Source of the DNA: Bugula neritina
Taxonomy: Eukaryota > Animalia > Bryozoa
Assembly (NCBI GenBank): GCA_964035545.1
Contig: OZ037766.1
Span: forward strand, 19,642,767 to 19,706,766
Direction of reading: 5' to 3'
Length of the DNA stretch: 64,000 nucleotides
Part shown: piece by piece, positions 275 to 46,469 of the stretch
Layout of the letters: each line of letters begins with the position of its first letter
How positions within the stretch are numbered: the stretch's first letter is position 1
Notes under the pieces: generated by a model
The model's input: only the letters and a program-made list of their open reading frames with translations
Database searches by the model: none
Told to the model about the DNA's origin: nothing
Made by a program: the position numbers and the translations under genes

Positions 275-3200
275 ATGATGTCTGAACAAACTGGTATGGT
301 AAGAGACTCATTAGAGGAAGAAGGTGAAGGAGTAGTTAATGGTGTAATCAAAGTTAACCATTCCCTATTGTCTCAACTTACGACCAGCTCACCTTTGGAT
401 GTCTACAAGCCTACCAACACATATAGGTATATAACTGCTGAATTTTCTTCTGTTCTACCTTTTTGTGTTTGTAGTATGTGCTGCTTGATTTTTAAAATCT
501 AAATACACCTTATTTGGTCTTTGCAATAATTAAAATTCCACCTTCCTTAGTAATTGTTTATACTTTATATCATAGTAGAAGACTTTGAAGCTAAAATAAT
601 GCAAAACTGTTCTTTCCCAAATTATTGCAACAAATATGATATTATTATGATGTTGTGATGGTTACAGAGACTAGCTATTATTTTCACTATTGAAATTGAA
701 AACTATCAGCAATGGTGCATTTAGTTTTTCTGTAAATTGCAGTAAGCTAACTTTATACGACAGATCATTTATTGGCTGTTTGTGAACATGTATGCCATTA
801 GCATGTACTATGATTTTGATGAAATTTCTTATAATGATTTTAATATAAGTCTTAAATATAAATTGATTAATGATTTAGTAAAGTAGACAATGTTTTATCT
901 AGCTGTGTAAATTACTGCCCATTTCTGCAGAAATTATTGTATAATGCAGAAATAACCAACATCTATAGCAGTGACTTCTCTAATAAAACACTTTTTAAGC
1001 ATAACCATAATATTTCCGTTTCTATTGGCATTTCATACTTAGATCAATAGTTAATGATTTGAAAAAGCTCTGTTCCGTGATTATTTATTGAAACATAGTG
1101 AAATTATATTGCATCAATAGCAATTATATTGGGTAAAAGTTCATATTTATCATATTTAGCAGGCCTACCTATAGCTATTGGGTGTGTAGCACTGGCCACA
1201 GAAGAAAGCTACTTTTAATACACCCAACTCATTATTAACTAAACTTATCATTCACCCATCAACATCCTTTAAAGTAAACTTTGTGAACTTCGTTATTACT
1301 ATTTAGTGAAATTAGATGTATATGTGTGTATTATTTTCTTAACCAGTAACTCAAGCTCTAAACTATAAAGTAATCTTTAGTCACCATTAATGAAAAGTAC
1401 CCAAAATGTTTATGTAGGACACGACTGTGTATGTGAATAGTTGTTGTCTGTTTGACACCCATTGTTTCTGCTAACTTCCTGCCCCAGCCAATGACCTCTG
1501 TGAAAACTACAAGATTTGACTACCATTGCTATAATTATTAGATAATGTACTTTACACGGGACTCTTTTGTAGAGCCAATAATGGTTATACTGATGAGTTG
1601 AGAAGAGATCACGGTGACTATCAGTATGTCAGCTCAGATGTGGAGGATGACCTACCTCCATCAGACTTTCTGCATGATTCTCTCTCTTTCAGTACAGCAG
1701 CTAACGATACACATCTCTCAGGTAATGGAGAGACAGACTCACTCTCGGCTGTTGGGAGGTACGCTTCTTCTGGCCCTTTGCAGTCACATAGTCCGAATAT
1801 GGTCAAATCAAAGCAGCCACCAGATCCCAAGATGCTGTCAGTTGAAAAGTAAGCTCATTGATGGCTTTTATTAAGCTAAAAACAGTTACATTTTTGGAAT
1901 TTTGGTTATAATGAGCTAGCATTTATTTAGATAGTATTTCAAATAGATTACAAAATTTCAGGAAATTACTAATTATTGTGCATTGTGACTTTTTAGTCTA
2001 TTTATGGAGACGATTTATATGCTGCTATATATAATTTTTGCAAACTTGAAAGTCAACAAATATCTAAGAGTTCTACATCATGCACCTGCTGCAAGTTTCA
2101 TTTAATCTGTTAGGATCTATTTGCTCATGAAAGTTTCTGGTGTAAACAAATCAATTAAATTCCTAAGCAGTCTATGCTGTTGGTCACTACGTCACATGTT
2201 ATCAACTGTAGAACCGTACCACCCCTAGCACTTACAGACAGCCTTCTGTGTGATGATCCTGACCCATCCACTGCTAACGTAGTTACAGACTCCCTAGACT
2301 TCTCTATGAATGACGAAGATCTTCAAAGAATAGAAAACCTAATGACGAGCAAAAATTCACTGCCGAATCCGTTTCATATCCAAGGAGGGCACACGCCCAA
2401 TACTCAGCATGAGCTTAGCATTTCATTGGCACTAATACAGAGCGCAACTCCTCGCCCTGTCTACAGGTTATCATTTAAGTTGCTAAACCTTGGTTTGTAG
2501 AAAGTGCATTAGCAATGATAACATGATGAAATTGGCTGATTAGCATTGAGCAAGATGTCCAAGTAAAGTATTGTTAAAGAAACTTTTGCCTTATGCTGAG
2601 TATAATTATTGTAGGTTAAGGAAAAAAGTACCTGCTTTAGATTGGTTTGATTCAGCTATTGAATCTATTGAATTTATTGACTTTTCTTCAGCTAGTCATA
2701 ATAATAATATCAAAACTATCATCTTTTGGTTTGTAGTCAAAGTGATTATGACACTAGCGTCATGTCATCCTATGCTGACAGAGAACTGGAAACTCCTCGG
2801 GTGTCTGTTGGTGACACAAGACATCTGCCACAGCAAAATAAGTATCAGAAGCAGCAGAATTCTGGTCAATTACCACATCAGGCAGTTCAGCTGACACCTC
2901 AGCAATTGAATCCCTGGCCGAGTGAACACTCTGGCTCTATGTACAATATGCAAAACCAACATTTATTTGGGCAACAGCCCACTGGCAATCAGAAGGTTAT
3001 GAAACACCAACCGAGCTCTCCTAAACATGCAGTAAGTTCTCAAAATACTAATAATAGCGCAGTGAGTGAACCTGGCCGACAGACACACCTTCATCACACT
3101 TCTGCTCAAGCGACAGGTCCTGCCTTTAAGATGACACCTAGCAATGGTCTACTCAGTCATCCAGGCCAGGTGTTGCATCCACTAACTTCTTCACCACCTC

Positions 3201-6200
3201 AGTCATTTCGAGCTCAGCACTACAACCTACCTGATCAATACATGGCACAGCAGCCACCTGCTCAACACATGTCATATAGGCAGCCACCTGATCAGTACAT
3301 GTCACAACAGCAACCTGATCAACACATGCATAGGCAACCACCTGATCAGTACATGGCACAGCAGCCACCTGCTCAACACATCTTGTATCAGCAACGACCT
3401 GATCAATACATGGCACAGCAGCCACCTGCTCAACACATGTCATATAGGCAGCCACCTGATCAGTACATGTCACAACAGCAACCTGATCAACACCTGCATA
3501 GGCAACCACCTGATCAGTACATGGCACAGCAGCCACCTGCTCAACACATGTCATATCAGCAATCAAGACAGCTCATACAATATCCTGTAGAACACCCAAT
3601 GGGTACACAGTACACCCCTCAAAATACTAACGATTCAAGCAAAATTCAAGGTCGTTCTTCTTCACAAAGCTGCGAATCAAAATCTTTCTCAAAAAATGCT
3701 TTTCCAAGTAAAGATTATGCCGTCAGTACTCAAACTGGAGTAGTTAGAACTGTGGCTCCTAAACCGGAAAGACCAGCTAAAGACTTTATTGAAAGAAATA
3801 TAAATCGGGCGAGAGGCGTAAGCTCTGCTAAGAGTGGCTATGCTACTAGAAGATTGCAAAGTAAGCAACAGCAGCTTGACCTGAAAAACTGGGCACCTGG
3901 TATGGTTGTTCCTCGAAAAAAGGCTGCCTCAGCAGACATGGCTACACGAACAACGGAGTCATCATCTCCTATAATTGAAAACCAGCCTCTATTCAACACT
4001 GTACCAAACCCAAACTCATCTGTACAAAGTGTGTGGGAAAATAATGCTGCTCAACTTTCACACACCAAAAATATTTCATCCTCCAAGCCGAATCCACATA
4101 CTCAGCGTAGTGATCGATCACATACAACCGGAAGGCAATCCTTACCGGAATCTCGAGTGAAAGTGGATGTGAACTTAAATGCTAACAGTGAAGGGCACAC
4201 AGATTTTGGTGGCATGAGATTGATAGGTCCAATAGCACAGCAGCACTTTAATGGTTCAAGGTCGTCTAATTTTGGCTATGCTAATGGATTGTATAATGAT
4301 GAATCAGATGCTGGGCCACCCCTTTGCTATCCTACCTCTGCTGTAACTAGTCATGGAGAGGTGAAGGACACAACCGGTGTTACAACTGTTGATAATAACA
4401 GCCTCTTCTATTATGGGCAGCAAACGTCATTTCAAGCTGGTCATGATGCTGCAAATGATTCGTACAGAGAACAATATAAGTATCTGATAGACTCCAATAG
4501 TTCTCATGCAGCTGTGCATTCTCAGTCCAGGTGGAATCCTCCACAAAAAGTAAGTATATTACTATATAGACAGTTATTCTCATGTTTTTGTATGGCTTCA
4601 AGTTCTTCATAGTAAAATTTTGTTCTGGGAATTTATTGTAGCCTCCAAACTTTGTACCCGACACATCAGATTTCACTATAGATGATGTCATTGCTCTGGA
4701 GGAAGAGAAGTTAAGGCGTATGTCACCGCAATCTTCACATTCAGAGCTAAACCCGTATCAAACTGTGCCACCAATCACACAGCAGGCTCAGAAGCAGTTG
4801 TTGGAGGGTGAAGCAGTTGCAGAGGAAAGTTCCTACTCTCGAATACATAAGGTGACTGATTGTTGGTGAAACTTTCTCTGCTAAGCAGAATAAAGAGAAA
4901 ACTGTAGCTTTAGTGATTTCATAGATGGTGCTTTTTTATACACATTTACCTCATTAGAAAGCATAATATTCTTGGCCATAATGACTGTATATTGACATCA
5001 GGTAAACGTGATAAATATCACTGCTTAATTAGTTGGATCACTTGTAGTTTTGGCCTTGTTTGACACCTTGTGGTGTAGAGCTAAGTAGGCTATGCAAGCT
5101 CTGAAAATTGATTACAAGTGTTGAATAGTGCACTGTCCGAAACTGCCAGAGTTAAATTTTACCCATGATGTCTGCTAGCAGGGTTCACAAAACTGCAATT
5201 AAAGGTTGCTACTTTTTTGATAAGCTAAGCCAGTCAAAGCATTCTCTTTAATGATTTCTTTCTGTGATGTTGAATCACATGAAACTTCAGTTTAAGTTAA
5301 AAAGTAGTCAGCTAGTTGAAAGGTGGTTTACAGTGTTGCAATGGCAATTGCCAAGCTCCCCATTTTCTGTGAAGGCTTTTAACCATATTTTATATAGTAA
5401 GAAGACTGATTAGTTGGCAGATAGTCACTTATATTGCTCCACTTACCCTCAGTAGATGAGAAATTGCAGCAGCCATATGTCTTAATAAGATCTGGTGTAT
5501 AGTGTACAGTATATGTCACTAACTGCTTTGCAGGTAGTTTTACTGGAATCCAAGATATTCCAATATTCTCTGACTGTACAACAGCCTGCATTGTATTTTC
5601 TTAATACTCCGAATATGACAGTCAATGTGCCTGGTTTACTCTATATGCAGTATGTTGATGAAAACACCGTGAAGAGCAAGTTATTTTCTCTTGTTGTAAT
5701 TGTTGCCTCAGATACAAAAAGAAAAAGAAGATAGAGCGGCTTCCTATAAAAAATATACCTTAAAAGATTACAAGCAGCTGAACAAAGAAGTAAAGCTAGG
5801 AGGACTTGGGCCTAGTGCAGATCCGGACGTTCTTAAAGAGAAGGTACTGTGTACATGTATTCTTGATTTCAAACAGTCAAGTTTTAATGTGATGATATCA
5901 AAGCAAGATAATGGTTTTCATACTGAAAGACCTGAATGAAACAATTGCTAGTATTCTATCAACCAGTTGCTTCAACTTATCCTCTACAATGTACAGTATC
6001 AGGCTTGTCATTTAGAGTATACTACCTGCACCACACTGCTAAGGGAAGAGGTGCTGCAAGGCATGTCCTTTTCTTTCACATAACATATAGCTAAAAAGTC
6101 TCGCCGTGTATATAACTAATATTATGCATATTACACATATCATTTAACATTAGAAGGATGCTCTCTACATCATAGACATGTCCCAGTTCCCTCACTGAGA

Positions 6201-25289: not shown

Positions 25290-28200
25290 TGGCCGGGTTA
25301 GGGAGAATATCGCTCTGGTGCTTTGACTACGCGTTCGGAACTAGTTGTACGGCGAGCGACGTTGATTGGGTTATTGTCCGTATTGTCACTGACGTTCACT
25401 GGAGGTAATTAGCTGGTGTTAGCATTTGCTTCTTTGATAGCTAGAAGTAACTGGCGTCTGTTGCGTCTAAATGTGTGTTTAAATGTACGTTCAGTTTTCT
25501 TGTTGAGTACGATGTATGATCTGGGTGTGCTGGCGTTTCCAACTACCTTGTACGTCTGTTCACTCCAGTGATTATCTTTTCAAACTCGTATAAGGGTTGT
25601 TGGTGTCAGTTGACTAAGTGGCTCTTGGAGAGCTGTTTGGTTGTGATGGGTTTGGGCTGCCAGCTTGGCATGTAGGTCGCTCTCAAGCAGCTTGTCGTGG
25701 TTGACGATAGTTGCTGGTGCTCGCTTGGGTAGATCAGTAGGCACATCGGTTCCTAGCATTACCTCGTTAGGGCTATATCCGGTAACTGTTTTTCAGCATC
25801 TGTATAACATCAGAGCCATTGCGGGTTCGTCTTGAGACAGTAGTTTCTTGGTGGTCTGTACGGCACGCTCGGTGGCACCGTTGGATTGTGGATAGTATGG
25901 ACTGCTGGTTATGTGTTCTATACCACAGTCACCAATAAACTTTGTGAACTCCTGACTGCTAAATGGAGGTCCATTGTCGCTAAGTAAACGGAGAGATATT
26001 CCCCATCTGGCGAAGATTGATTTGCTTTTCTGAATGATGATATTAGTTGTCGTACTGTGTGTGCGTACGATTTCCAAATATCTACTATACAGATCGACAA
26101 TGACTAACTACTTGGCACCTTTGTGTTCTAGCAAATCTGTAGCGATGGTGTGCCATGTACTCTCGGATATCTCATGTGTTATCATCGGTTATTTACGGTT
26201 CGCAGGCCTATTCTTGTTGCATTATTCACATGCGGAAATGTGAGTGTTAATGTCTCGGTTTATGCTGGGCCACCAAACTGATAGTGCTGCGCGAGATTTA
26301 CATTTCTCAGCACCCCAATGGCCTTGGTGTATTGCTGTTAGAATGTCTGGTTGTAACGTTTCCGGTATGACAATTCTGTTGTTGTATAGTAGCATATTTT
26401 CGGCGACGGATAGATTGAAGCAAACGTGATAGCAGAGAAGAAGCGGTTCTGGTACATCCTTGACATATCTTGGCCAACCCTCTATGGTGTATACTACAGC
26501 TCTTCGTATTTCTGTTATTTCTCTGATTCGATTGTTCGATATGGGAATGTTGGTCCTTGCAGAGGTAAAATGTGATTCAACCTCTTCTGTGAACTTATGG
26601 TCGGATTCACAGCGGGTGTTAGGCAACCGGGATAAGGTGTCTGGTACTGTCCTTTGTACACCTGGTACATATTTGGTTATAGGGTTGTAGCGCATTAATC
26701 TCATCAGTAGGCGTTGACAACGAGGGGATGCACTGTTTATATTGTTTCCATTAATCATCGGTACTAGAGGCGAATGGTCGGTTGACAGCTCGAACTTGTT
26801 CAGGCCACGGAGGTATTGGTCAAATTTTTCACAGCCCCATACAAATGCGAGTAGCTCTTTCTCTATGTTAGAGTAGTTCTTCTCTGTGTCATTGAGTGTG
26901 CGTGATGCAAACGGTATGCATTTGCCCTCCTGCTTTAGCATTGCTCCGATACAATTCTGCGATGCATTTGCGTGAAGACATGTAGGTGCGTTTTTGTCAT
27001 AGTATCTCAGTCCTGGAGATTGTTTGAGCTGGGCTATAATGTTCGCGACTGCCTCCTCCTGATAGCTTTCCTACACCCATTGTGTATCTTTTTCAGTAGG
27101 TGATTGAGCGGGCTTGCAAGTTCTGCTAGGTGTGGAATGTAGCGTTGCATGTAGTTCACCATGCCTAGGAAGCGTCATAGTGATGGTATATCTGTCGGTC
27201 TGTTTAAGGCTTTGATGGCTTGCATCTTGTCGGGGTCTGGCTGAGTTCCTTTAGAGTCGAACATGTGACCCAAGAATCTCACGCTGGCTTGTCTGTATTT
27301 ACACTTTTCATCGTTGAGCTGCAAGCCATGTTCAGCAATTTTCTTCAGTGCGATCTGTAGCCTGTTGTCATGTTCTTTGATGTTTGGTCCATACACCAGA
27401 ATATCATCTTGGTATACTACAATGCGTTCGCAACCTTGCAGTATTGCTTCCATTTTTCTTTGGAAAATCTCGCTGGCACTGGTGATGCCAAACAGCAGGC
27501 GATTGAAACAGAATCGGCCACGGTGAGTTATAAAGGTAGTATATAGACTAGAGTCCTCATCTAACGCTATTTGGTGATAACCACTACGGGCATCTAGAGT
27601 TGAGAAGGCAGTTGCCCCGTTGAACTTAGAGGTTAATTCTTCGAACGACAGAATAGGGTATGGTTCTCTCAGCACTGCACGATTAACAGCACGTAGGTCG
27701 ATGCAAAGCCTAACTTGACCAGATTTCTTTTCGATGGGCACTAGCGTCAAACACCATTCAGTGGGTTGCGACTGGCCTGATTATGCCCTCATTTAGCATG
27801 CAATCTATTTCCTTGTCCACTTTTTCTAACATAGGGAACGAGATACGGTTTGCAGTTTTGATGCACGTTGGTTCTACGTCGTCACGAAGCTTAATTACTG
27901 CTGGGCTTCCTCCGACCATGGCTAACTTGTCGCTTGTCTTGGCGCCTAGGATGGCCATTTGTTTTACTGCCCCTCTAGATAAAAGATTAGAATGACAATT
28001 GGCAACATGACAATTCATATTATATGCATTATCACAATAAAAAGTGTTAAAGACAAAATAACCATGTACAGTAACATTGGAATTTACAGATTTGAGAGTG
28101 ATATTGGTTTTATTCAGTAGAGGTTTATCAGGCAATAAATCATAGCTCTTTTTTGACAATACTGTTGCGTCTGCCCCAGTGTCTACTTTAAATTGTACAT

Positions 28201-29163
28201 TGGAGCCATTTATAGGAATGTTTACATACCAAGGTTTGCCATTTTCACATATGTTGGTAACTGCATTCAGATAGAAAACATCAGTTGACGGCCCATCTCC
28301 GGAGTTGACTAGTTCTGATGCGTTTTTTTGTTGTGCCATCTTACGGGTCTTGCAGACTTTTGAGAAGTGATTCTGCTTTCACAATAGTGGCACTGTTTGC
28401 CATATGCAGGGCACTGTTTACGTTTATGACTGGAATCACAGTTATTGCAGTTGACTACATGGTGATGGTTAGGTGTTTGTGTATTATTACTACTAGAACT
28501 AGTGTTATGCTGGTAATTGCTCTGGCTTCTTACTTCTCGAGTGTGTGAGTGTCTGTGCTGTCTGCTGTGATGTGATGGTGTGGTAGTACTAGTTAGGTTA
28601 CGGCATTGTCGAAATGGTATTGCATCGACCTGCACTTGCTTGGCAATCTCTTGCTTTATCTCCTCATGTTGTCGTGATATTGATATTGCTTTAGTTAGGT
28701 CTAAATCATCTTGTAATTGCAGCTTGGTTGATAGCTCTTTATCGGTCGAACCAACTACTAGCCTATCCCTTATGGTATTATCTTTCTCTGCACCAAATTC
28801 ACAGTGTTCACTTAATCTGTAGAGTTCTCTAATGAAAGTTTTAATAGACTCTTCAGGTTTTTGTGTTCTTGCATGGAACATGCTACGTAAATGAATGACA
28901 TTTTTCTTTGGTGTAAAGTATGCTAAAAACTTGTTACTCACAATGTCAAACTTAGCTTTCTGATCTTCCTGCTCGAATGTAAATGTCTCATACAGCTGCT
29001 CAGCTTCCCCTCCCATGGTATACAGAAAGGTAGCCAGCTGCACTTCACCACTTTTGTGTGTCAGGCCACTAGCCATTCTATACAGTTTGAACCGTTTTAG
29101 CCATTCAGAGAACTGCGATGGCGTTAAAAAGTCAAATTTTGCTGGAGGTCGTAGTTGAGACAT
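25290..29163 (-). pseudogene. Disrupted gag-pol polyprotein (gag with two zinc knuckles, protease DTGA, RT YQDD, RNase H, integrase)
   Basis: ORF fragments 28309-29199 (gag; ATG at 29163), 27758-28339 (FKVDTGA), 27175-27750 (LDARSGYHQI, VVYQDDILVYG), 26222-26941 (YSNIEKELLA, TDHSPL, HQGHWG), 25793-26077 (SDNGPPF, YPQSNGATER). Separated by frameshifts and premature stops; the 3' end is approximate. Confidence 0.9.
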
Positions 29164-29249
29164 GTTTGAATTCGATAATGATAGTGAATGGGCTGTCACA
29201 AAGTCACAATATGTGGATTAAAACTTTAAGTTAATTTGTTAATAGAAAA

Positions 29250-38703: not shown

Positions 38704-40124
38704 ATGAGACAGACCTGCTGCAGTCAGTTATTCCTACTCAGCGTAGTGGTGACTATGCTTGTCTCCAATAAATATGTGGGAGCAGCTCCTTCACTAACCA
38801 GTGCTCCACAAAACGGTGAGTACACAAAGAGAACTAGGTCTATTAATAATATTCTGCTATTATACTAGTAGTGAAGGGAGGCACATGTTTAGAAATGAAT
38901 GTATGTGTTAGAGTTGAAACCTAATTTCGCACACTAGCCATAAAACAAACCCTGTAATTTTCATATTTTAATCGGATATTAGTTATTTAGTAACATTTAC
39001 GTATGCAGTAGCTGATTGATCATCAATACCCCACACACTATTGAGCATGCAGTTACTATAGTTACAATTTATAAAGCACTGAGATATGGGTTTTTGCTTG
39101 GCTTGGGTTTATAATTTTTAGTTTGAATTATGTGATCCATGATTACTTTATTTTGTAGCATATGACAAAATTTTTCAACAAAAAGTAAAACTAAAAATAC
39201 TGCAATTTACTGCGATATCACAACACACATAAGGGTACTATTAGTCAACTAGAGAGTAAATTGTAAAAGCATGTGTTTTGTTTTCTCCGTAAATCCAGTT
39301 GAGAGTTGTGTGTTATCAATGTGTGTATTTTGCTTGAATTGTGATGTAATAACATACTGTTCTGATAACACAATGTTAAAAAGAAGTTGTTGTAGTCATA
39401 CATGAACTGAGGACTGAGTAAGAACAATAGCTACGCTAATGGAAACACATCACTGGTTATTCACTATATACATGATTTATAATCCGCTAGCTAACTGGGG
39501 GCAAAGTTTTGTTACTATAAATTATAACATTCTCTGGCCCAGGCCTTTGGTGTCTATATGACAACAGAGTTTATTATGAAGTTACCTCCCCAAAAAGTTA
39601 CAATTTTTTTCAGTTGCTGATGTTTCTTAACAATTATAATTTGAAATTAATTTAGTGTTGTATGTGTGCATATATGTAGCCTATAGTTTTCATTAAATGG
39701 TCAATAGCATACTATTAATGTATAATTAACCAGCAATAGTTAAAAATTGCTATCAGTGTCTGAACTTTGTTTTCTTTCAGTCTAGTAACTGTTGATGGCA
39801 GTTTCATTTCCTAATTTCAAACGCATTTTACATAATTTATATATTACTTATACCTGTTATTCATTTGTTTGAGTTACAGAAGTGACCCCACAGCAGCAGC
39901 GAGTCTGGTCCAATGGATGTGGATACTGTCACCCAACACCAAACAGTATTATGTCACAGTCTCCAGATTCAAATTGTACCAAATACATTTGGATAACAGC
40001 AACCGATAGAGTCTACACCATGCCCTGTGGTCCAGGAACAAAGTTTGACTTTGTTACTTGCACCTGCAACCATGCTTATGCTGTGGATTGTAAATGCAAC
40101 TCCAATTTCATTCCTACTAAATAA
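38704..40124 (+). CDS. Small secreted chitin-binding type-2 (CBM14/peritrophin-A-like) protein, 118 aa
   Basis: Exon 1 38704-38815 (signal-peptide-like MRQTCCSQLFLLSVVVTMLVSNKYVGA, donor G|GTGAGT), phase-1 intron, exon 2 39880-40124 containing PDSNCTKY...YTMPCGPGTKFDFVTCTCNHAYAVDC. Confidence 0.8.
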
Positions 40125-41513
40125 TCACTGCAACTAGTGAGGAATGTGTTGAATTTTATTGAGTAGTATGATTTGTTCTAATATATGTAGCTACTATACC
40201 TACAAACTCTAAGTGTTTGATGTATCTATACTTGTGTTAAAATGAACTATCCCATTAAAATAATACCCATGAAGTCAATAGTTATAGCATGATTGTTTTG
40301 TCGTTATATATTATGTATAATTGATATAAAATGTATTTAACAATACGTAAAATTACATGGTCAGCAGTTCCAAGGTGCAGTTGACAGAACTTGGCAGCTC
40401 CATAATTCATGCTACACCACGGAGAGTTATTGCATTCTACGCGATTTCATGAGACGTATGATGCTAGCTGCTATTTGACCATGTTATAATTATTGTTACT
40501 ATTTATATATTCCTGCCTGTTTACATTGGAACCTGGAAGTTGCACAATCAGCTATGAGTTTATGGTACTCACTTGAAAATTTCATCCAGTAAGTTGTCTG
40601 GTGTCACAATCTAATGACCACTATTTATTAGCATGTGAAAGAGATTTTGGCGGAAATTTCCCTCAAGAAAAAATGATATTTTATATTAAGTAAGATACAA
40701 GGATGGTTAAAGTTAAATATACTTTAGTTAATAAGTATGAACAGCAATAATCTGAAAATAACAGCAATTTTTATAACTTTTCTAATTGACATTGTTTCAC
40801 TGCATTTGACTAAAATTAGTAAGACAATAGTGCATGGCATTTATGAGATGTACATTACAGTCTGGGAGACAAATCTACTGTTCTATGTGTTATAAGTCTG
40901 CGCTAAAACAGAATGAAATAGGTCAGCACCAAATAAACAGTTTGACATGTTGGCAATATAATAATGTATAAAGTTTTAGCCAGTAAAGAAAAAAATGAGT
41001 GAAGATGACATTTTCACCTATAACAAGTAAAGCTATTGAAGTTGCTGTTCCATGTTTTATTGCTTATCTTGCGCTTGTTGAGGCAAAGTGACTTGTAATT
41101 TTGATCATCAAAACGTCATCACTGTTCTCCTCTAGGCTAATTTTACAATTGCGTTCTTTATTGAAGTGTATTAGCTTTTTGCTTACTCATGATATTTCAG
41201 GCTATATAATTTACAACCAACAAAAATTCTATATAAGCATCTCTAAACCCCTTTAAAGTAGTTCCAGTATAAACCTTATAATGTTATTAGTTCACTGAAA
41301 TATGAAAAGTTTTCTAAATGTGAGAGAGATAGCTTACTGATTACAAAGTAAAATATTCATTAAAATGTTAATTAGAAACAAATTAAAGCCAAAGGCAACA
41401 GATTGAGATTGGTTAAGAGAACGGAAGCTGGTAAAAGCCATGTTACATATGTGAGAAAGATCATTATTATAGTGTACACATATTCAACTTTAATAGCAAT
41501 CAGCTTGAGAAAG

Positions 41514-42284
41514 ATGGAGTTTGGAAAAACATTTTTAAGATTTTTTGTTTTTATTACTCTAATTTTTTCAACGCAAGGAGAATTAAATCATACAACTTAT
41601 GATTTATCAGTTGAACAACAACAGACCTACCCTCAAGATGGTATGTAATTGAAATACAAAATATTTATATCAAATATTTATGTATAATTTGATCAACTTA
41701 TAATGTTTTGTTGGTTTAGATCAATAATGTATTAAATAATCCACTAATTTCATAGTCTATATTTTTAGAAAAAATCTTAAGATCAACACAATAAATAGGA
41801 ATTTCACTTAGGCACACTTTGACTGTGTTGAATCAAAAGTATTTCTGGTTTTAACAACAGTGTTGAAAAGGGAAATGAATAGGTTTTCATCCACTAACTG
41901 TGCTTTTATTTCAAAATAATTCATTCAATGCAACACAAGTAAACGGAATAATTCACCAAAAAGCATTGGACATCAATAGTAACTATTGCAAAACAATTAT
42001 TTATGAATACTATATATTCATACTTATCTTATGAAGGCAATAGTTAGAGTTAAATTACCAGTAAAATAGTATATGTAGAAGCACTTGTTTATAGTTTTGT
42101 TATTGAACTTTGCTATTAAACGCTGTAGTTCACTGCTTCAGCTATTATTTTAGCTAAAGTTATAAATATGCACAAGAAATATTGGAAAAGTGGAGGGTGG
42201 CTCAGAGTCAACCGCTTTCTCCAAAAGGTTTGGGGGAAAAGAAGCAAAAGCTTATCTGCGTATAAAAGAAATCCTACAAGCTAA
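41514..42284 (+). CDS. Putative secreted prepropeptide (85 aa) yielding an amidated Trp-rich cationic peptide
   Basis: Exon 1 41514-41640 (MEFGKTFLRFFVFITLIFSTQG|ELNHTTYDLSVEQQQTYPQD, donor G|GTATGT) splices in phase 1 to exon 2 42154-42284 (AKVINMHKK-YWKSGGWLRVNRFLQKVW-GKR-SKSLSAY-KR-NPTS*). An alternative in-frame acceptor lies at 42142. AATAAA at 42437-42442. Confidence 0.72.
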
Positions 42285-45200
42285 AGCTATATGTAGAAAA
42301 CCCTCACATTAATATTATAAGAAAAAATACAAGGCCTAATTGTAATACAGTGAAGCTTGAAGTTTCTCACTCACATAACATACTTTGCTTTAAACACTTT
42401 TGGTGTGAGGTTTAGTTAATTTTTATAACTACTCAAAATAAAATATATTCTGGTATACTTTACTTTTGAAATTCTGTATGGTGTTATGTTCTAACCTTAC
42501 TCCTTATTATTTTTCCAAAGTAATTGGCGATGTAGGTTTATAAAGACACAAATATTTTTTCAACAAAACTTAAAATTTCATCTATTCTGTAGAATTGACC
42601 TACTTTTTGTTTCAGTGCTTTTGAAATTTTGTAAATGCATGTGCTTGTTTATTACAACTTAATATGTATTGTATTAATGCTATTGTTTAAAGTGCAGCCA
42701 CTATAATTGTATTAGGGTTCCTATATTTATATAGCGCGATTAGCATAAAAAATACACTACAGAATCCACAAATGTCTTTTACATAAACACTGGATAGATG
42801 CTAAAGTGATTTATATTTTATATATGCTCTGTTTTGTTTTATAACTTAAACAAAAAACATCTATTATTTGCAAAATTTTGGATGTTACATATACATGTAG
42901 TAATAAAGAAAGTGAGTTTTGAAAGTCACAAGGCAATCAAATACACATATTTGACATTAAAGAAAGAGCAACAATTATAATACTGAGGTCTAAATTGTGA
43001 GAAATGAAGGGAAATTTCATCTTTTAGTTGAAAACTCAAAACATGCGCCCTTGAAGTAGAACAGGTGCTAATAATTGATCTGCTGGTTATATAATGGAAG
43101 ATTCTGTTAACAGAGCCTTTGACCCAACTGCTTTGATAGTAAAATGATGACTTGTGTTCATTATTATACTCGATGGTGGGTAGTGAAACTAAAATTAGTT
43201 ACAAATAATTGCAATTAGTCTCTACTTTCTTAACTCCCATTAGCTTGCATCCTGTATTCACAGTGCTAGGCGTACATGTTATAGACTCCATAGTATAGAC
43301 TATAGAGTATAGACTGCTGCATTGTTCAATATTCAATATTCATTAGCTGCTGTAAGTTCGCCTTTACAAAACATTAAATAAATTACAAACAGCCCGACTA
43401 AGGCTTACTGCCCAATCAGCTATTCACTTTACTATATTAAGCTACTGTATTATGCTTCAAGTATTAAATTATAATTTTTTGTTTAGTGCTTATCCATACA
43501 AACTTTGAGTTATTGAAACAACGACTCAGTGCGCTGAGGCACATGTGCAACTTTTTCTTTATGCAAACACTTCAAGTTCACATGCTGTGGCAAGTTTAGC
43601 AGAGCAAATGATTTTCTGTTTGCTTTGATTTAACCTGTGTGCAGTCAAGCTAGAGTTGGCAACCATCAGAGCTTTAACATTGCCTGAATGTTCAGTCTGC
43701 ATCTATTAGACTGTTGATAGCTACAGTACGGTCAACATTGTCAGTAAAATCTTTCTAACTTGTTAGTACCAGCCTTTCAAGAAGGAATATTGGCCAGACT
43801 TGGTAAGTTTGGAAGAAACCAGTAGTTAAATTCAATTTAAATGTCACAGGGATAGACTATGCTATTTATTATCAATAGATAAATGTCTAGAAAGTAGGTT
43901 ATGCAATCATAATTGATATATTAAGTTTACTTGAAGAGCAAATTTGTTTGCTACAGCAAAGATATCCAACACTTTGCTGACCACTAAAACATAACCCAAA
44001 ACTTCAATTAAAAATAAGATTATCAATTTCACACTAATCTTTATTTTTTAGACTTTCTTGTATGAGCATTTTAATAATTAGAATAGGAACCTTGAGAGCT
44101 ACTTTTAAAATCATCTTCCATGCAAAACTTTAGACAGTCCTGTATAGTAAGAACTACAATATGGGTGCAGTATCTATTCAATCAAAACATTATTAGTTTT
44201 GGTACTTACCGAAAAAAAGAGTTTAAAACATGAGCCTTATGAGGGTATTCCTCAGCCGCTGAATCTACATTAAGTAAGTTTTTGTGTTTCTCACAGCTTC
44301 AATGTTCGGTGCTATAGAAGGCTTGCAAGATGTCATTTTTATTTCTTGTCTGAAGAATACCATGTTACAAGTAGACATATTAAAACTCAACACATCTGCT
44401 TTACTTTTTATTCTTTTTAATATTTTATTACAAACATTGCACTAGAATAACTGCTCACGGTTTTAAACCTGAATTCAAATAGATTTAAGTAAGCTGTCGG
44501 TGTTTACATCCATTCCTTTTATCACAGAGCTACCACTTTATTATCACCACTACTTTTAGTTATACCAAAGCACTTTAAGGTACTGCATAGTAATGTCTAT
44601 TTTGTTACAAGATTGGATAGTTTTCAAACACTGGTAGCTTGTGCAAATATTTGTGCTTTGAATTCGGTGCATACTTACTGAAGTAATTTCATGGTTCAAC
44701 TTGTGGACATTGCCTAATATCTACAATATCATTTTTCTTTTAGTAAACAATCTTAAGAATGACTTTTTATGGTATGTATTTCACTAAGTTATAGAAAGAT
44801 AAGTCACAAAGCCCCAATCACTGCAGGCATTTGATGTTATAGCCAAAAGCATTGTAATAGTATGTGCTATCTAGGCTGACACAAAATGTGTTGCAGCAAT
44901 TTCAAACTTCACTATATATCATTGCTTGACTTGACAAGCAATAGGTGGAGATATACTAACCCTACTTTAAATAAGCATATGAACATATGAAATAATATGA
45001 CGTTAAAAGAAGAAGACGATTTATCATTTGGGTAATGATACCTGAACTGTGCTTTTAAAAGTACTTTTGTCTCTCATAGTAAACTACGTTGTTACAATGT
45101 AACCAGGTTAAACAACTCTTTGCATAGTCATGTAAGGTAAGCTCTTGTGTACAATGCACTGCCAGATTTACGGATCTACCAATTTTAAAAATTTTATACA

Positions 45201-46469
45201 GTCGTACTTAGCAAATTTATTATTTGGTCTTCCAATTTAGTAGTGGTAGTTATCCTTGAAAGCATTGTTATTTTCAAATTATGCAACCTTGCAAGTTGCA
45301 TTTGTTCTTTGAATAGCAAAAAAAATTTCTACGGGTAAAACATTTCGATATGCAAAATTTTTACGACCAAATTTTGATTTGCAATGCCTAATTGTCGGAG
45401 ACTCTATGTATCACATCTAAAAATATGTTTTCTTGTGCAATTTTAATAACATGAAAATGTTACTTGAGGCAACAAACCAGACTTGCTATATGTGTACTAA
45501 TGAAGATTAGTGTAGTGTATTGCACAAAATTAATTCAGCTATTGAATCTCTTGCATAGCTATACTAAAACTGTTGAAACTTTAAATCATCATCTCTATCT
45601 TATTCCAAAGCGCTTCAATCTATAGCACATACAAGATATGGCAGATTAATTTCAGATCAAAGGGTTTTTCATAGAAACTAACCCGCACTTCTTTTTACTA
45701 TAATTATGTTTTTCAGAGTTGCATGCCATGGCAATTTGGCAGTAAATTCCAAGAATCTAATTGGATAATTTTATTAAGTTGTATAGTATAAATAATAAAG
45801 CAACCAACTGGTGTACTTTAATGCTATATAGTTAAGAGATAAAGAGGTAGCCTTGAATAAAATTATTTTAGTTTAGACATGCTCAAACCAATGCAAAAAA
45901 ACACATAGACATCTGTGATAAAAGCCAAGCTATTATTGTATGTCAACGCTGTATTCTTTCAGTTTCATTCCTCTGGCAATGATTTTATATTGATTGGTTT
46001 TAATTTCTGATTAAATGAAAGTCTGATAACTTTCTTCCTATTTGTTTGCACATTTGAGTTGGTTGTTTGACTCCACACTAATACAAGAGCTTACAACTTG
46101 GTTTTGGTTCCATGCCTTGTTATATTGCAGTGCACAAGTTGTGTTTACTTGCAAGAATTTAAAAATCTATGCAAAATATTATACTTCCAGAATTCTCTTA
46201 CAACTTTTGTTGTCAATTGAGTGAATATTGTAATGAAACACAGCTAATATAAAGAGATCCCTTCCTTATAGCTGTATTTTATTGCAATATTCTTTATATT
46301 CTTCTACATATTTTAGTGTTGGTGCGCCAATACTGAAATATGTAGCAAACAATTCTTAAATCAGTTTCTGCAATAATGCTATGGTTCAGAAAATTATAAA
46401 AAGTGAAATACAATGAAAATGTTTTGTTAAATACTAGTTATTGAATTATTGCTTATATGCAGTCTAGAA

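Follow-up and report, generated by a model that had tools for sequence, protein, structure and literature searches.

A predicted two-exon gene for a lineage-restricted amidated peptide in the bryozoan Bugula neritina

Introduction

Do two short open frames in an AT-rich part of the Bugula neritina genome together make up one gene for a secreted, amidated peptide, and, if they do, would that peptide serve in signalling or in defence? B. neritina is a major fouling animal and serves as a model in studies of larval settlement, of biofouling and of the bryostatin symbiosis. The stretch of DNA analyzed here (hereafter the window) comprises 64,000 nucleotides of AT-rich animal DNA with a GC content of about 32%, and several lines point to its genome belonging to the B. 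neritina sibling-species complex of cheilostome bryozoans. The assembly from which it was taken measures 216 Mb in 321 contigs; the published draft genome of B. neritina has a size of 214-221 Mb and made use of Illumina data of 2016 that came from the symbiont project (PMC7576161). The initial annotation, drawn from the letters of the window, had described a hidden prepropeptide at this locus and offered two roles for it, that of a host-defence peptide or that of a divergent Wamide neuropeptide.

Our main reading, to which we assign a probability of about 0.75, is that the locus is a real, unannotated, single-copy two-exon gene predicted to encode a lineage-restricted amidated peptide. The fuller statement, in which the precursor of this real gene would be processed at KK and GKR to an amidated 18-mer with an orphan signalling role, is more tentative, and we place it slightly short of even odds.

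Gene architecture and predicted precursor

All the features of the locus lie on the forward strand. The predicted start codon (ATG, 41514-41516) has A at -3 and G at +4, a good initiation context, and opens a signal peptide of 22 codons (41514-41579) with a predicted cut after STQG. This call is a heuristic one based on the translation and its hydropathy: a basic n-region (K5, R9) is accompanied by a hydrophobic core of 9-10 residues, whose Kyte-Doolittle 9-mer maximum is 3.06, and by T at -3 and G at -1 of the cut. The first part of an acidic pro-region follows (41580-41640), with a net charge of -4 and an NHT sequon, and ends one base into a codon that the intron splits. Exon 1 comprises 42 codons plus one extra G at 41640, immediately before a GTATGT donor at 41641-41646. 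The predicted phase-1 intron (GTATGT...TTTTAG) takes up 513 nt (41641-42153), or 501 nt with the CAG acceptor at 42139-42141. The two in-frame acceptors, AG at 42152-42153 and AG at 42140-42141, would start exon 2 at 42154 and 42142, respectively, and both restore the frame of a short ORF at 42168-42284.

Exon 2 starts with the remainder of the pro-region and KK (42154-42179, with KK at 42174-42179), which lead into the predicted mature peptide of 18 residues (42180-42233). The peptide is followed by GKR (42234-42242), which supplies the Gly amide donor and a dibasic convertase site, and by a C-terminal stretch (42243-42284) made of a 7-residue spacer, KR (42264-42269), four residues and the stop codon TAA (42282-42284). 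The mature 18-mer has Trp at positions 2, 7 and 18, contains no acidic residue and has a computed net charge of +4 (+5 with a free N-terminus). The initial annotation had claimed that a signal-peptide exon with a phase-1 donor joins in frame to a short exon, that the product runs from signal peptide and acidic pro-region through KK, 18-mer, GKR and spacer to KR, and that the 18-mer is cationic with three Trp and no acidic residue, all of which we recovered. As for the gene end, its feature positions were correct, but two corrections were needed: coding ends at 42281, ahead of the TAA, and the AATAAA that had been cited as following the gene lies at 42437-42442. This possible poly(A) signal, 152 nt past the stop, is weak evidence at 32% GC. 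It falls inside a 44-nt stretch that is absent from the sibling lineage described below, whose contigs carry ATTAAA 108 nt past the stop, where the window has TTTAAA. Because it is not conserved in that lineage, the AATAAA was rejected as support for the gene.

Together, these two exons would encode a prepropeptide of about 85-89 residues destined for secretion. Its signal peptide would be removed after residue 22, a prohormone convertase would cleave at KK and after GKR, a carboxypeptidase would trim the basic residues, and a PAM-type enzyme would turn the exposed Gly into a C-terminal amide, yielding YWKSGGWLRVNRFLQKVW-NH2 with a monoisotopic mass of 2321.27. At the family level, the genome contains 24 exon-level matches to Cu2_monooxygen (PAM-type, PF01082), a family that also covers DBH-type enzymes, and 12 matches to the convertase P-domain (PF01483). 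The amidated 18-mer would then act through its receptor as an orphan, lineage-restricted neuropeptide or hormone.

To estimate how often such a layout arises by chance, we used a script that requires an ATG exon resembling a signal peptide, with a GTRWGT donor, an acceptor rich in pyrimidines no more than 1.5 kb away, and a dibasic...G-dibasic motif in the same frame. Applied to the real window, the script returned one locus, the present one; applied to 1000 order-2 Markov copies of the window, it returned two cases. About seven chance layouts are expected over the whole 216 Mb genome, and the criteria were set after the finding had been seen. Therefore, the layout alone is not decisive. Since the initial annotation came from a whole-genome scan, this expectation counts in favour of another reading of the locus, in which the two exons would be chance frames in partly conserved non-coding DNA (e.g., regulatory DNA near 43300-43650) that are never spliced or translated. 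The comparison with a related genome bears directly on this reading.

Conservation in a sibling lineage

Two contigs of a sibling lineage (L003 and L004) were retrieved via P0001, an unspliced exon-1 ORF of 44 residues predicted both from a Logan contig of SRR4020083 and from a JGI scaffold (L004) with AY690838 in its name. AY690838, which occurs three times in the paper on the complete B. neritina mitochondrial genome (PMC2678162), is taken to be the accession of that genome. There is one difference between L003 and L004 in 1.1 kb and, because they are nearly identical to each other, they count as one independent lineage. Their background divergence from the window is 12.2% (188 of 1546 aligned non-coding sites), which suits such a comparison well. 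The flanks and intron show 22 indel events in 1546 nt, compared with none in the 258 coding nucleotides (P 0.025). L003 and L004 retain the start codon, the GTATGT donor and the two acceptors as well as KK, GKR, KR and the stop. The initial annotation had named loss of the frame and of the GKR site in sister species as an argument against the gene; both are conserved in the two contigs.

Divergence is unevenly spread over the non-coding parts of the alignment. The interior of the intron differs from L003 at 13.8% of sites and holds five indel events, and the 3' flank differs at 13.2%, whereas only 7.1% of sites differ in the 5' flank (41203-41513), compared with 13-14% in the intron and 3' flank; 49 of the 50 positions at 41400-41449 are identical to L003. 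This low divergence is as would be expected of a promoter, and the interval 41350-41513, non-coding and of low divergence from L003, is best described as a putative promoter with the 5' UTR. The open frame that extends upstream of the ATG is broken in L003 by indels of 1, 2 and 3 nt, and this interruption supports 41514 as the start.

The coding sequence is itself heterogeneous. Relative to L003, the signal peptide differs at 7.6% of its sites, with no synonymous and five non-synonymous changes, all of which keep hydrophobic or small residues, while the exon-1 pro-region differs at 8.2% of sites, with four synonymous changes and one non-synonymous (pS 0.33, pN 0.02). From the acceptor through GKR, 2 of 89 nt have changed, against the background of 12.2% (binomial P 0.0009). 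The first 26 nt of exon 2 show no difference, and between the start of exon 2 and GKR (42156-42242) there are no non-synonymous changes and two synonymous ones, both within the 18-mer, so that L003 and L004 encode the same 18 residues as the window and GKR is invariant. The tail after GKR, although its KR and stop are kept, has changed at 6 of 42 sites (14.3%), five of the changes being non-synonymous and one synonymous (pN 0.16, about neutral). The signal peptide and the post-GKR tail change at about the neutral rate. The pro-region and peptide taken together have six synonymous changes and one non-synonymous (Fisher P 0.0002), a partition that was picked after seeing the data; the entire coding sequence has 7 synonymous and 11 non-synonymous changes (P 0.06). 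Judging from the one sister lineage compared, purifying selection falls on the pro-region, the peptide and GKR.

Other open frames of the same region provide a control. Among the ORFs of at least 38 codons in the 4.8 kb aligned region, 32 of the 36-37 others are broken in L003, 29-30 by an indel and three by a stop, and the indel-broken frames include the upstream extension of exon 1 beyond its ATG. The four control frames that are still open in L003 (exon 2 aside) have pN/pS values of 0.76-1.5. Within the 4.4 kb downstream of exon 1, exon 2 is the sole plus-strand frame that is both open and indel-free in L003, and the search for an alternative partner exon retrieved no other conserved open plus-strand frame in that interval. 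A minus-strand ORF that runs across exon 2 was also considered and was dropped, as it has a stop in L003.

The reading as chance frames in non-coding DNA can draw on more than the expected number of layouts. No RNA evidence was found in the indexed runs or among transcript-derived proteins, the test on the whole coding sequence gives a P of 0.06, the AATAAA is not conserved, and nearby non-coding DNA is as conserved as exon 2, with 95% identity at 41353-41452 and 98-99% at 43301-43500. Nevertheless, the constraint at the locus tracks codon positions and the predicted parts of the precursor, with six of the seven changes in the pro-region and peptide being synonymous and with the tail and signal peptide relaxed. 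Moreover, neither exon has acquired an indel or a stop in the sibling lineage, unlike the great majority of the other frames, and every splice and processing signal is retained. On this balance, we regard the non-gene reading as unlikely and favour the predicted two-exon gene.

The same comparison touches on which part of the precursor would be active. As a convertase site, KK is weaker than KR or RR, and the constraint on the pro-region equals that on the peptide, so that the whole chain is also a possible product. If KK were left unused, the product would be the entire conserved amidated peptide of 47-51 residues. The active molecule could be this whole chain, or the pro-region could have a role of its own.

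Searches for transcripts, copies and homologues

None of the indexed sequencing runs that hold the stretch is an RNA run. The sole run holding it (X1) is genomic DNA, in unspliced contigs without joints that differ from the window by about 1%. X1, which belongs to the same lineage, has AC>GA at 42172-42173, its only coding difference, by which the His before KK becomes Arg, giving R-K-K. In a collection of 5.8 billion proteins, searched with the two exons separately, neither exon 1 nor exon 2 was present in any annotated protein or any protein derived from a transcript. Eleven neuropeptide and hormone precursors of B. neritina have been cloned, with GKR and KK sites in use; the RYamide and FMRFamide transcripts were not recovered and 8 of 11 in situ attempts failed, which the authors explained by the very low abundance of neuropeptide transcripts in whole-larva transcriptomes (Wong et al., 2016; PMC4990251). 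Because neuropeptide transcripts are reported to be so scarce in this species, the missing RNA weighs less against the predicted transcription of the present locus.

Searches for homologues were similarly restricted in their outcome. Exon 1 retrieved P0001 of the sibling lineage only, even by profile search. For exon 2, a word-index protein search and the JGI metagenome contigs yielded no homologue, the ESM Atlas offered nothing usable, and phmmer gave no real homologue among 1.84 billion representatives. The only phmmer match to exon 2 was P0002, a ShK-repeat protein, whose E-value of 8e-6 sums six matched stretches in near-identical repeats; a single repeat of P0002 reaches 24 bits against exon 2, with 10 identities in 34 positions. 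Because the E-value is a summed one, and because exon 2 contains no cysteine and has no Pfam ShK match, the similarity to P0002 was taken as chance. A ShK toxin-like origin of exon 2 (PF01549, a six-cysteine family) was rejected on the same absence of Cys and of any Pfam match at E <=1.

In its own genome, the locus is single copy and not a repeat, with no paralogues at E <=10, and no Rfam family was detected at 40000-46000. No homologue was found outside the species complex in these searches, and the gene is probably lineage-restricted.

Genomic neighbourhood

The window holds several other features. An interval downstream of the gene (43300-43650) is 97-100% identical to the sibling lineage, against a background of about 87%, and contains a CCAAT-like motif, with no conserved ORF or Rfam match. 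It may be a conserved element with a regulatory function or serve as promoter for a gene downstream, with a possible first exon whose GGTAAGT donor lies near 43803. Upstream by 1.4 kb and on the same strand, an 80-residue frame (39882-40124) with at least six Cys has a weak match to the chitin-binding Peritrophin-A family (CBM_14) of 19.3 bits, below the cut-off of 22.1; it probably belongs, as an exon, to a different gene for a secreted protein. Farther away, a Ty3/gypsy-type LTR retrotransposon occupies 26222-29199 on the minus strand, where four ORFs cover gag, an aspartyl protease, RVT_1, and RNase H with an integrase zinc domain, and the position of this copy matches that of the GC-rich DNA at 26-28 kb. 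A plus-strand frame of 628 residues at 2726-4612, in a stretch with 42% GC, consists of Gln/Pro-rich tandem repeats (QPPDQYM.. units) and matches no Pfam family.

Candidate roles of the peptide

The first of the roles to be weighed is that of a divergent MIP/allatostatin-B/Wamide, which would act, for instance in the settlement of larvae, via the MIP (sex-peptide-type) receptor. The predicted C-terminal Trp-amide (VW-GKR) speaks for it, as activation of MIP receptors depends above all on the C-terminal Trp (Williams, 2020; PMC7270403), and MIP triggers settlement of other lophotrochozoan larvae (PMC11027379). However, a W-amide C-terminus is also found in unrelated families, and MIP precursors are repetitive, with peptides of 9-12 residues in which the N- and C-terminal Trp are conserved (PMC7270403). 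The present precursor, in contrast, holds one W-G-K-R unit and one 18-mer, in which 10 residues separate W7 from W18 (W-x10-W), and it has no sequence match to any protein in the searched collections. It is because of the one copy, the 18 residues and the W-x10-W spacing that we do not file the locus under the Wamides. The contrast with MIPs in copy number and Trp spacing that the initial annotation had itself drawn is borne out, while the divergent Wamide that it had nevertheless kept open departs from the family in precursor repetition, peptide length and Trp spacing, and we consider it very improbable. A better family candidate also exists in the same genome, a multi-copy GW-amide precursor (L006) whose first copy reads W-x8-W-amide.

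A tandem W-G-K-R pattern was not enriched over control in the genome. The same W-G-K-R search gave one real multi-copy GW-amide terminal exon, on another chromosome than the present locus. This exon lies on the minus strand of L006 (1455-1721), corresponding to about 29708600-29708880 of C3 of the genome, and ends ...SWLTNLFNAGW-GKR, SGKGW-GKR, SGLGW-GKR. On these features, L006 is a candidate bryozoan MIP/GWamide gene and a better fit to that family than the present locus.

Given a real gene, two candidate roles are to be compared for its product. A signalling peptide (neuropeptide or hormone) has, in our estimate, a somewhat better than even chance, and a defence peptide a distinctly smaller one. 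If the gene were antimicrobial, its acidic propiece would neutralise a cationic, Trp-rich, amidated peptide that would be secreted and would disrupt microbial membranes. The net charge of +4 (+5 with a free N-terminus) facing a propiece of -4, the three Trp in 18 residues and the lack of acidic residues fit this role, as does the C-terminal 12-mer, with a helical hydrophobic moment of 0.72 that is reached by 4% of shuffles. Clavanins and styelins of ascidians are likewise laid out as a signal peptide with an anionic propiece and an amidated cationic peptide (PMC10608444). However, the whole 18-mer is no more amphipathic than shuffles (its helical moment of 0.36 is reached by 25% of them) and is interrupted by a GG pair, and the locus is single copy without paralogues. 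Gene-encoded antimicrobial peptide families typically present the reverse of an invariant mature peptide with a changing signal peptide, whereas here, at a neutral divergence of 12%, it is the signal peptide that varies and the mature peptide that stays invariant. Such peptides are, in addition, usually abundant in transcriptomes, and the indexed runs and transcript-derived proteins gave none for the locus.

We consider signalling likelier than an antimicrobial role because the mature peptide is invariant, with a drifting signal peptide, and because the gene is single copy. Transcript abundance appears to be low, which was also counted toward signalling, as was the finding that the full 18-mer is not unusually amphipathic. 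As an account of the locus, the combination of a real gene with an antimicrobial product is unlikely. Of the alternatives offered by the initial annotation, the underlying gene model stands, the Wamide falls on three defining features, and defence ranks below signalling.

A further step, possible though doubtful in our view, would be that the locus founds a new bryozoan-restricted family of amidated neuropeptides, unrelated to Wamide/MIP and with its own receptor, possibly recent, possibly involved in larval behaviour or settlement, and with a pro-region that may itself be active. If the predicted gene is real, it would add to the 11 published B. neritina precursors (PMC4990251) either a lineage-specific signal or the first linear defence peptide for the phylum, and it would illustrate how short two-exon peptide genes escape annotation in the B. 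neritina genome, although the present gene by itself opens no new kind of biology.

Comparison with known peptide systems

The predicted precursor shares single traits with several known systems. With MIP/Wamide precursors it has in common the predicted C-terminal Trp-amide and a second Trp upstream (Williams, 2020; PMC7270403). It differs from them in being single-copy, in its 18-residue peptide, in the 10 residues between the Trp pair and in showing no detectable homology.

With styelins and clavanins, it shares the signal peptide, the acidic propiece and the cationic C-amidated peptide, here with an amphipathic C-terminal segment. The comparison with styelins made in the initial annotation therefore stands for the layout but not for kinship, as styelins belong to a different phylum, being peptides of chordate hemocytes, and are described as 31-32 residues long, Phe-rich and heavily modified (PMC10608444), whereas the present peptide has 18 residues and comes from a bryozoan, not an ascidian. 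Unlike styelins and clavanins, moreover, the present peptide is invariant between sibling lineages and is encoded by a single-copy gene.

The predicted precursor also resembles the single-copy amidated precursors of lophotrochozoans, including BnVP-like and BnNPF of B. neritina, in which a signal peptide, a propeptide, a single dibasic-flanked peptide and GKR are likewise found (PMC4990251). The small size of the gene, its expected low transcript level and the concentration of selection on the mature peptide are also shared with these precursors. In contrast to them, the present gene is without a sequence relative in the searched collections and absent from the published set of 11 B. neritina precursors, and its predicted peptide, instead of directly following the signal peptide, is placed toward the C-terminus, after a conserved acidic pro-region.
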